This document shows, one piece after another, positions 6,655 through 6,810 of a stretch of DNA of 64,000 nt (its first letter is position 1; every line of letters begins with the position of its first letter). The DNA lies in the IMG/VR virus record IMGVR_UViG_3300045970_000794, positions 62,001-126,000 of that record; one strand, given 5' to 3'. Below the pieces are notes generated by a model that was not told where the DNA came from, did not search any database, and saw nothing but the letters and a program-made list of their open reading frames with translations. The translations under genes and the position numbers were made by a program.

Positions 6655-6690
6655 AACAAAAAACCCCGACTTTTTATGGTCGGGGTTCGT
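6655..6690 (-). terminator. intrinsic terminator (attenuator) between leader ORF and tRNA operon
   Basis: AACCCCGAC-cataaaaa-GTCGGGGTT followed by a T run. Confidence 0.85.
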
Positions 6691-6720
6691 TATCCTGTAT
6701 TATGATTATATTTTTACATA

Positions 6721-6810
6721 CTATCCATTTAGGCATACCCTGACCGTCTCAATACGACTATTACGTCTCATCGAGTTAATCCAATTCATATGTATGCTAA
6801 TGTTTTTCAT
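6721..6810 (-). CDS. 29-aa leader peptide MKNISIHMNWINSMRRNSRIETVRVCLNG
   Basis: Manual translation; lies between promoter and terminator; contains a putative antiterminator strand GGTCAGGGT. Confidence 0.75.
   Translation of the reverse strand: MKNISIHMNWINSMRRNSRIETVRVCLNG

Follow-up and report, generated by a model that had tools for sequence, protein, structure and literature searches.

The data presented here make it likely that a phage tRNA gene array is gated by a ribosome-mediated transcription attenuator of the trp type. The parts of this element, their conservation, its three mutually exclusive helices (one of them an energy prediction only) with their co-variation, and the match between leader codons and array anticodons are shown; leader translation, ribosome stalling, coupling of translation to transcription and the direction of the regulation are inferred, and there are no experimental data. 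Positions refer to the window, that is the whole stretch of 64,000 nucleotides that was analysed (positions 62,001 to 126,000 of the virus record IMGVR_UViG_3300045970_000794), and all elements of the switch lie on its minus strand.

The element in the window

A first-pass annotation of the window had proposed the order promoter, 29-codon ORF, intrinsic terminator and tRNA operon, and this order held, with all elements as placed. The promoter block (6863..6924, minus strand) is of the Bacteroidota TTG/TAnnTTTG type: a -33 TTG (6893-6891) is followed, after a 20-nt spacer, by the -7 box TAAATTTG (6870-6863). The span from TTG to -7 box (6893-6863, minus strand) matches the Bacteroidota -33/-7 promoter pattern. 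The motif TAnnTTTG is common here and shows no enrichment over the whole window; the promoter call thus rests on conservation in the homologues, where a TAnnTTTG box lies 25-75 nt ahead of the ATG and is itself preceded, at 14-26 nt, by a TTG (30 of the 35 with enough upstream DNA), and on the recurrence of the 62-nt block, with 60/62 identities, at 15987-15925, ahead of a second cluster of tRNA genes in the window. That cluster has the same promoter, yet no comparable ORF and terminator were found there. A sigma-70 promoter scan was uninformative in this window. Transcription is inferred to start at about 6856, and the 5' untranslated leader (6811..6856, minus strand) is A/U-rich, with an A at -3 of the ATG. 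Further up lies a gene of 183 aa without known family (7494..6943, minus strand), followed by the A/T-rich spacer that holds the promoter.

The leader ORF (6721..6810, minus strand) has 29 codons and a TAG stop: MKNISIHMNWINSMRRNSRIETVRVCLNG. Its regulatory codons 5-18 (6757..6798, minus strand), AGC ATA CAT ATG AAT TGG ATT AAC TCG ATG AGA CGT AAT AGT, specify solely Ser, Ile, His, Met, Asn, Trp or Arg. As the first-pass annotation had counted, 19 of the first 20 residues belong to this set, which makes the leader the single extreme outlier among the window's 429 ATG-ORFs with 20 codons or more: the runner-up has 15 in-set residues among its first 20, a typical ORF has 8 and the mode is 6-9. 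The seven amino acids account for 32% of residues in the long ORFs of the phage, and dinucleotide shuffles of codons 5-18 never fell fully within the set (0/20,000; average, 6 of 14).

Past the leader stop, after a gap of 32 nt, comes an intrinsic terminator (regions 3 and 4 of the switch; 6655..6688, minus strand) with arms GAACCCCGAC and GUCGGGGUUU followed by a U-tract. The hairpin (6688..6661) has 10 bp, six of them G-C, and an 8-nt loop, its T-run extends to about 6655, and its energy is -16.6 kcal/mol; it ranks first in a listing of 11 terminator-like sites within 2500-16000. An exact search with the terminator pattern matched unrelated phages in which the same stem ends a structural gene, and the hairpin of the window is thus an ordinary terminator. 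A second terminator occurs nearby (8745-8720), between same-strand genes, with a promoter motif after it.

The controlled array (3128..6648, minus strand) comprises about 16 tRNA-like genes and, a point that the first-pass annotation did not contain, is interrupted by three endonuclease-like ORFs. Its anticodons are, in order, GUG, CCA, CCA, one unclear, UGA, GUG, GAU, UAU, GUU, GUU, CAU, CCU, UCG, UCU, UCU and ACG. The first gene, tRNA-His(GTG) (6648..6575, minus strand), starts 12 nt past the terminator T-run. The anticodons cognate to the leader codons (GUG, CCA, UGA, GAU, UAU, GUU, CAU, UCU and ACG) are all present in the array. Infernal alignments confirm UAU, ACG, UCU, UCG and CCU; several of these are called wrongly by ARAGORN. 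The earlier claims about individual codons fared accordingly: of the anticodons TAT, TGA, TCT, ACG and CCT proposed to match ATA, TCG, AGA, CGT and AGG, all but one were confirmed by Infernal, and the remaining one, UGA, is in the array. The caveat that the leader AGC/AGT codons lack a cognate tRNA also held for the window, where no tRNA-Ser(GCU) was found; relatives have one. The statement that the leader residues are exactly the amino acids of the downstream tRNAs was slightly too strong, since one array member (6351..6266) has an unclear anticodon, called by ARAGORN as Pro-UGG with G33. No TAnnTTTG was seen on the minus strand within the array, so that, as far as motifs tell, the array depends on transcription passing the terminator. 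The array also holds structurally odd tRNAs, without D arm or with long variable arms, and other translation genes (a CCA-adding enzyme, Pth2 and tmRNA) lie alongside it.

A family of homologous modules and its proposed RNA switch

We collected 37 distinct leader and terminator modules from viral and metagenome contigs of many samples. These are one family, and the codon/array match and the co-variation with reduced arrays described below each count as essentially one evolutionary observation. Relatives were reached through an odd tRNA motif of the array, which led to two phage contigs (L032 and L040) with the same tRNA order, each carrying a leader ORF homologue and then a terminator. A search with the conserved leader DNA core added five relatives, and a conserved 56-aa ORF, used as a protein anchor, brought further ones. 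A rule blind to composition was also applied: every terminator just upstream of the 56-aa ORF was taken, and the ORF preceding it was read off. This ORF was the leader homologue everywhere except in L113, where no ORF was found, and in L162, where the terminator ends a large gene. Other routes returned no further modules: a distant-mode blastn of 6300-7500 against GenBank phages gave only a tRNA-sized match in Bacillus phages, synteny via the upstream 183-aa gene gave the contig itself, invariant identical copies and only two unrelated short contigs, synteny via the CCA-adding enzyme gave relatives without a downstream tRNA array, and a back-translated leader pattern matched only the contig of the window.

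The architecture of the module is conserved throughout the family. The leader homologues have 24-33 codons, and a terminator (-9.9 to -19.2 kcal/mol) follows 20-39 nt past the leader stop in 37/37 modules. At every locus with enough sequence, a same-strand tRNA array with the same gene order lies downstream, and no promoter was seen between the terminator and the next gene. In 36 of the 37 modules the 56-aa ORF sits between the terminator and the first tRNA, so that in these relatives the switch would control that gene too; the window lacks it. Since the 56-aa protein is found in further phages that lack the leader, and the window has the leader without the protein, each can be found without the other and the leader goes with the tRNA array. 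The 56-aa protein matched no Pfam or PHROG family and was not found in bacterial genomes, which precludes a direct host assignment. The stop codon of the leader is not conserved (TAA 24, TGA 8, TAG 5). The proposal that the leader might respond to UAG termination therefore failed and is rejected, TAG serving as an ordinary stop in the window.

Could the ORF be incidental, the element being an untranslated RNA switch or a small RNA, for instance with a protein, a metabolite or a tRNA as its direct ligand? The region 6860-6650 is indeed strongly structured (z = -4.35) and the core nucleotide sequence is highly conserved, as such a reading would have it. We nevertheless consider it very unlikely because: (i), the ATG is invariant in the homologue alignment, with an A at -3 in 33 of 35 homologues; (ii), length changes between leaders are in whole codons; (iii), only one frame is open in the five leaders checked, the other two being closed by stops in 5/5; (iv), the constraint on the residue set acts at the amino-acid level; and (v), no T-box or riboswitch model of Rfam, nor any other Rfam family, matched 6650-6940.

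The attenuator reading rests on alternative pairings between the leader and the terminator. In the window, the region-2 core, or antiterminator strand, is GGUCAGGGU (6737..6745, minus strand), which can pair either with region 1 or with the 5' arm of the terminator. Its pairing with ACCCCGACC (6745-6737 against 6686-6678), pointed out in the first-pass annotation as a classical antiterminator, proved to be the best duplex that the leader can form with that arm (-12.9 to -14.1 kcal/mol). Dinucleotide shuffles reached this score in 0.2-1.2% of cases over three runs; for random genomic segments the figure is 4.3%. The antiterminator (2:3) and terminator (3:4) helices are mutually exclusive; the minimum-energy fold of a prefix transcript ending before the 3' arm includes the antiterminator, and the full transcript folds into the terminator.

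The antiterminator is a property of the family. When a 13-nt window was slid along each of the 37 leaders and the duplex with its own terminator 5' arm was scored, the best position always (37/37) started within leader nt 56-67, even though the arms are of at least eight sequence types. Region 2 and the arm change together, giving the compensatory pairs GAGUCGG/CCGACUC, GAAUCGG/CCGAUUC, GUCAAGG/CCUUGAC and GUCGAG/CUCGAC, as well as GAAUUCGG/CCGAAUUC, and UGAGUCGG/CCGACUCA versus AGAGUCGG/CCGACUCU. With a fixed, alignment-defined region-2 window, the mean duplex energy is -11.5 kcal/mol with the own arm versus -8.5 kcal/mol with other arm types, and permuting the arms among nine types attained the observed sum in only 0.02% of trials (p=0.0002). 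These per-sequence duplex and permutation tests replaced consensus folding: RNAalifold returned no structure on the MAFFT alignment (A4), which we attribute to the misalignment of terminator arms of different types.

With these results, coincidence in AT-rich DNA is all but excluded. Short ORFs (the 429 ATG-ORFs) and TAnnTTTG motifs are admittedly common in the window. Against this stand the conservation of the module in 37 sequences from many samples and the outlier, shuffle and permutation results.

The third helix is predicted from folding energies. Region 1 (6778..6802, minus strand), which would form the 5' side of the leader hairpin as a putative anti-antiterminator, lies inside the regulatory codons, and the minimum-energy fold of the ORF of the window alone pairs nt 9-33 with nt 66-85. 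The apical stem-loop of this hairpin (6748..6775, minus strand) carries the conserved AGA CGU AAU AGU codons. Across the homologues, the region-2 core is predicted to pair with nt 40 or below in 37/37 minimum-energy folds of the ORF (mean z-score -1.8), within a long predicted leader hairpin whose 5' strand is made of codons 3-11 and whose tip is AGA CGY AAU AGU; GAGACG is invariant in the A4 alignment. The element thus has the three mutually exclusive helices (1:2, 2:3 and 3:4) of the trp-type four-region design, with the reservation that 1:2 is an energy prediction only.

The geometry of the leader would suit a ribosome-driven switch. A ribosome covers about 15 nt on either side of its P site, the Arg-Arg codons lie at about nt 40-48 and region 2 begins at nt 56-67. 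We infer that stalling on codons 5-16 would place the ribosome over region 1, with region 2 left accessible. In the leaders of 32-33 codons, the region-2 core would lie outside the footprint of a ribosome that has reached the stop, so that termination must there rely on the re-formation of the 1:2 helix. Naked RNA favours the antiterminator in the prefix folds of several sequences, the window included, and the default state of an untranslated leader is thus unclear.

Leader codons and array content

The residues used by the regulatory stretch are those that the arrays serve. Over all loci, the cleanly read array anticodons are CCA; UGA, GGA and GCU; GUG; GAU and UAU; CAU; GUU; and ACG, GCG, UCG, CCU and UCU, which means that the confident ones serve only Trp, Ser, His, Ile, Met (or Ile), Asn and Arg. 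Odd ARAGORN calls fall on long or D-arm-less genes, and some of the cases inspected are misreadings; some low-confidence members have unresolved anticodons, among them a Thr-CGU with A33 in L040. Leaving aside the leaders that go with a cut-down array, the remaining 34 homologues draw residues 5 to about 18 solely from the seven array-served amino acids. The boundary is sharp: across the first 15 leaders, the stretch that opens at position 5 and closes two residues past the Arg pair has 205/205 residues in the set, versus 41% in the rest of the peptide, which is background-like, and positions 2-4 are looser (K, T, Q, L). Within the regulatory columns, at least 13 amino-acid replacements have occurred and all stay in the set, when only 40% of nonsynonymous single-base neighbours would remain there. 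The tolerated swaps are often between chemically unlike residues (W/S, N/I/H, M/I, and S/M/I/N/W at a variable codon).

The first-pass annotation had proposed to look for co-variation between leader codons and tRNA content in related phages, and the outcome is positive. In one clade (L138, L141 = L144, and L143) the array is reduced to Trp-CCA, Arg-ACG and, in some cases, Arg-UCU, followed by protein genes. Out-of-set residues in the regulatory stretch (Thr6, Leu10 and Leu17) occur only in the leaders of this clade, which keep TGG AGA CGC, the codons of the remaining tRNAs. This pattern agrees with what a sensing model predicts; being restricted to one clade, it counts as a single event. The homologues thus support the earlier idea of a multi-tRNA depletion sensor, of which ribosome stalling and tRNA cleavage as a trigger remain inferences.

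The order of the residues is also conserved (NIH[MI]NSI..WRRNS and, in one subgroup, a C-terminal ESAMSVSFFDD), which exceeds the need of a pure codon-set sensor and could possibly be explained by RNA pairing, by a functional peptide or by nascent-chain arrest. The last possibility amounts to a rival explanation, in which the RNA switch is unchanged but is driven by a nascent peptide that arrests the ribosome through its specific sequence, as with TnaC, Erm leaders or SecM, and that senses a small molecule or general translation stress in place of the supply of particular tRNAs. In its favour, it is the order and not the set alone that is conserved, RR[NS]S being nearly invariant and a W preceding RR in 36 of 37 leaders. 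On the other hand, chemically unlike replacements are tolerated at many positions, and solely within the array-served set; the leader of the window itself has no W before RR; and the relaxation of the set only in the reduced-array clade is left unexplained. The invariant nucleotides moreover also build region 1 and the apical hairpin, which would account for their conservation through a role in the RNA. We therefore regard peptide arrest as an unlikely driver.

A second rival treats the leader as a plain gene for a small protein, ended by a terminator of its own, with the tRNAs made by leaky read-through and the composition match having another cause. In its favour, the C-terminal half of the peptide is conserved in a subgroup with third-position variation, and the terminator at 8745-8720 with its promoter motif shows a terminator between same-strand genes close by. 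This reading leaves unexplained (i) an antiterminator that co-varies with the terminator arm, together with the 1:2 helix, (ii) the sharp boundary between in-set and background composition and (iii) the absence of a promoter between the terminator and the next gene, and it also appears unlikely to us.

The attenuator model and known systems

We thus retain the attenuator as the likely reading and propose the following mechanism, all steps of which are inferred. Transcription would start from the Bacteroidota-type promoter and a ribosome would initiate on the 29-codon leader, where codons 5-18, lying on region 1, would be read by the tRNAs that the array encodes (Trp, Ser, His, Ile, Met, Asn and Arg). 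With fast decoding the ribosome would advance, region 2 would be occupied by region 1 or by the ribosome itself, the 3:4 terminator would form and RNA polymerase would stop 12 nt before the first tRNA. When matching charged tRNA is scarce, slow decoding would stall the ribosome on region 1 and free region 2 (GGUCAGGGU), which would pair with the emerging 5' arm of the terminator; the terminator would not form and the array would be transcribed, together with the 56-aa ORF in the relatives. The products of the array would speed up translation of the leader and so switch the array off, a negative feedback on tRNA supply via decoding. The model assumes tight transcription-translation coupling in the presumed Bacteroidota host. 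That the signal is tRNA supply rather than amino-acid supply, and that cleavage of host tRNAs acts as a trigger, is inferred and not shown.

A bolder reading is possible, in which the element is a phage tRNA-damage alarm that would read, by decoding, whether the host still has an intact pool of precisely these tRNAs, and would switch the array on once anticodon nucleases of the host or starvation had depleted them. In this speculation, the invariant TGG-AGA-CGY core and the minimal arrays (Trp-CCA, Arg-UCU and Arg-ACG) would mark the original targets, and the odd tRNAs (without D arm, or with long variable arms) would stand in for the lost ones, being resistant to the nucleases and released when needed.

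As far as can be judged from sequence alone, the element conforms to the definition of leader-peptide attenuation given in PMC1183508. Like the trpL, hisL, thrL, ilvL, leuL, pheL, pheM-pheST and hisS leaders, it has regulatory codons overlapping region 1 and mutually exclusive 1:2, 2:3 and 3:4 pairings; as in trpL-type attenuators, an intrinsic terminator lies just before the first controlled gene and decoding speed would be the signal. It differs from trpL-type attenuators in several respects: the controlled genes are tRNA genes (with the 56-aa ORF in relatives) and not biosynthetic or charging enzymes, the element is borne by a phage, apparently of Bacteroidota, and there is no run of a single codon but 14 codons spread over seven amino acids that match a multi-tRNA array. 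Unlike known attenuator leaders, it has no Rfam leader family match (Trp, His, Thr, Leu and similar models; 6650-6940, E<=0.1 or E<=1).

Two other classes of RNA switches invite comparison. T-box riboswitches are likewise transcription attenuators that report tRNA status and control translation-related genes; however, a T-box binds uncharged tRNA via its specifier loop and needs no ORF, whereas the phage element has an ORF constrained in its amino acids and no T-box match. In the TnaC, ErmCL/ErmBL and MsrDL arrest leaders, as proposed here, a ribosome stalled on a short ORF remodels the downstream RNA, and some arrest-peptide leaders act by transcription attenuation (PMC4335068, PMC10314930). 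Such leaders require a specific peptide and a ligand, whereas residues of the phage leader are replaced freely within the array-served set.

The array itself resembles the tRNA clusters of T4 and other large phages, with homing-endonuclease-like genes interspersed and other translation genes alongside. To our knowledge, the expression of such clusters has been put down to temporal promoters and RNA processing, and no decoding-based feedback on them has been described. A survey of attenuators and of their distribution (PMC2965389) reports leader peptides for biosynthetic genes and for hisS, and tRNA genes or tRNA operons did not come up in a term search of this survey. The first-pass annotation knew of no described example for a phage tRNA operon, and we found no leader-peptide attenuator ahead of tRNA genes or phage tRNA arrays in the full-text literature searched, the coverage of which is incomplete, so that this is absence of evidence only. 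We regard the mechanism as an old one; what would be new is the class of controlled gene, the multi-codon design and the setting.

The genes under known leader-peptide attenuators serve to make amino acids or to charge tRNAs; in this case the controlled genes are apparently the tRNA genes themselves, on a virus. If the model is true, decoding speed would feed back directly on tRNA supply, and large phages would regulate their tRNA arrays by demand, beyond an early/late programme. The switch element is small and modular, and would be a natural sensor that integrates seven codon families within 42 nt. Ribosome-mediated attenuation would also be extended to Bacteroidota-type phage systems. Finally, the leader would provide a handle on how phages choose their tRNA sets, that is, whether these serve codon supply or the replacement of tRNAs lost to host defence.

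tRNA-like genes lacking a normal D arm

Four paralogous tRNA-like genes on the minus strand of the array (4066..3986, 3518..3440, 3431..3352 and 3207..3129, with the anticodons UAU, UCG, UCU and ACG) have only 4-5 nt at the position of the D arm. All four carry instead an insert of about 20 nt after the anticodon arm, and AAUCGUAAUGGAGUUG is common to these inserts. The same architecture was found in 41 viral (phage) contigs (L020-L059), where the anticodons are nearly always those of Arg. In these genes, a CCGA stretch following the acceptor is able to base-pair with a UCG that follows the anticodon arm, an arrangement resembling a D stem that encloses this arm. 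No description of such an architecture was found in the literature searched.

Long variable arms and an ambiguous anticodon

The minus-strand array also contains tRNAs with a long variable arm, at 6529..6450 and 6444..6354 (both CCA) and at 3897..3811 (GUU). Such genes are also present in relatives (phage contigs L062, L064, L068, L101 and others). They measure 80-96 nt, and their anticodons correspond to Trp, His, Asn, Ile and Met; this assignment rests on the anticodon and the amino acid accepted is not established. In the relatives, the long tRNAs are adjoined by canonical tRNAs of 72-76 nt with the same anticodon. A long/canonical pair of this kind is present in the window for Asn; both CCA genes are long and both His genes are canonical. 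In its anticodon stem, the long GUU tRNA differs from E. coli tRNA-Tyr by a single base.

Another member of the array (6351..6266, minus strand) has an ambiguous anticodon loop, CGUGGAG, in which position 33 is a G. The ARAGORN call is Pro-UGG; at the homologous array position, the relatives receive calls of Pro, Ala or Ser.

Inserted genes and variation around the leader

Three endonuclease-like ORFs are inserted between the tRNA genes on the minus strand, namely a PHROG endonuclease (6231..5845), a NUMOD3-containing ORF (5793..5053) and a Cys/His-rich HNH-like ORF (4744..4160). Similar inserts occur in the relatives at different array positions. A conserved 56-aa ORF of unassigned function (L040, 2448-2615; L032, 8337-8504; and 30 or more further loci) sits between the terminator and the first tRNA in 36 of the 37 modules. 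It is not present in the window, also occurs in other phages without the leader, and has no Pfam or PHROG match. Many relatives (L032, L060, L063, L064, L068, L072, L074 and others) also have a 5' UTR with a small G/C hairpin (e.g. GGGGNNNNCCC) downstream of a conserved AUAUUUAU motif, and the 5' UTR of the window has no clear counterpart of this hairpin.

Translation-related genes elsewhere in the window

A second copy of the promoter block that lies ahead of the leader (15987..15925, minus strand; 60/62 identity) precedes a further tRNA-like gene cluster (about 15620-14348), which has no leader ORF or terminator comparable to those of the first array. The minus strand further encodes a tmRNA (19364..18950, 72.6 bits), a Pth2 peptidyl-tRNA hydrolase (9669..9337) and a CCA-adding enzyme (8715..7507). 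Just ahead of the CCA-enzyme gene, a strong terminator (8745..8720, minus strand) is directly followed by a TATCTTTG promoter motif (8692..8685, minus strand), forming a terminator/promoter pair between same-strand genes. Finally, an amber suppressor (CUA) tRNA with its own TAUCUUUG box is found at 9807..9732 (minus strand). TAG still terminates five long ORFs of the window, so that TAG recoding of the genome is not apparent here.
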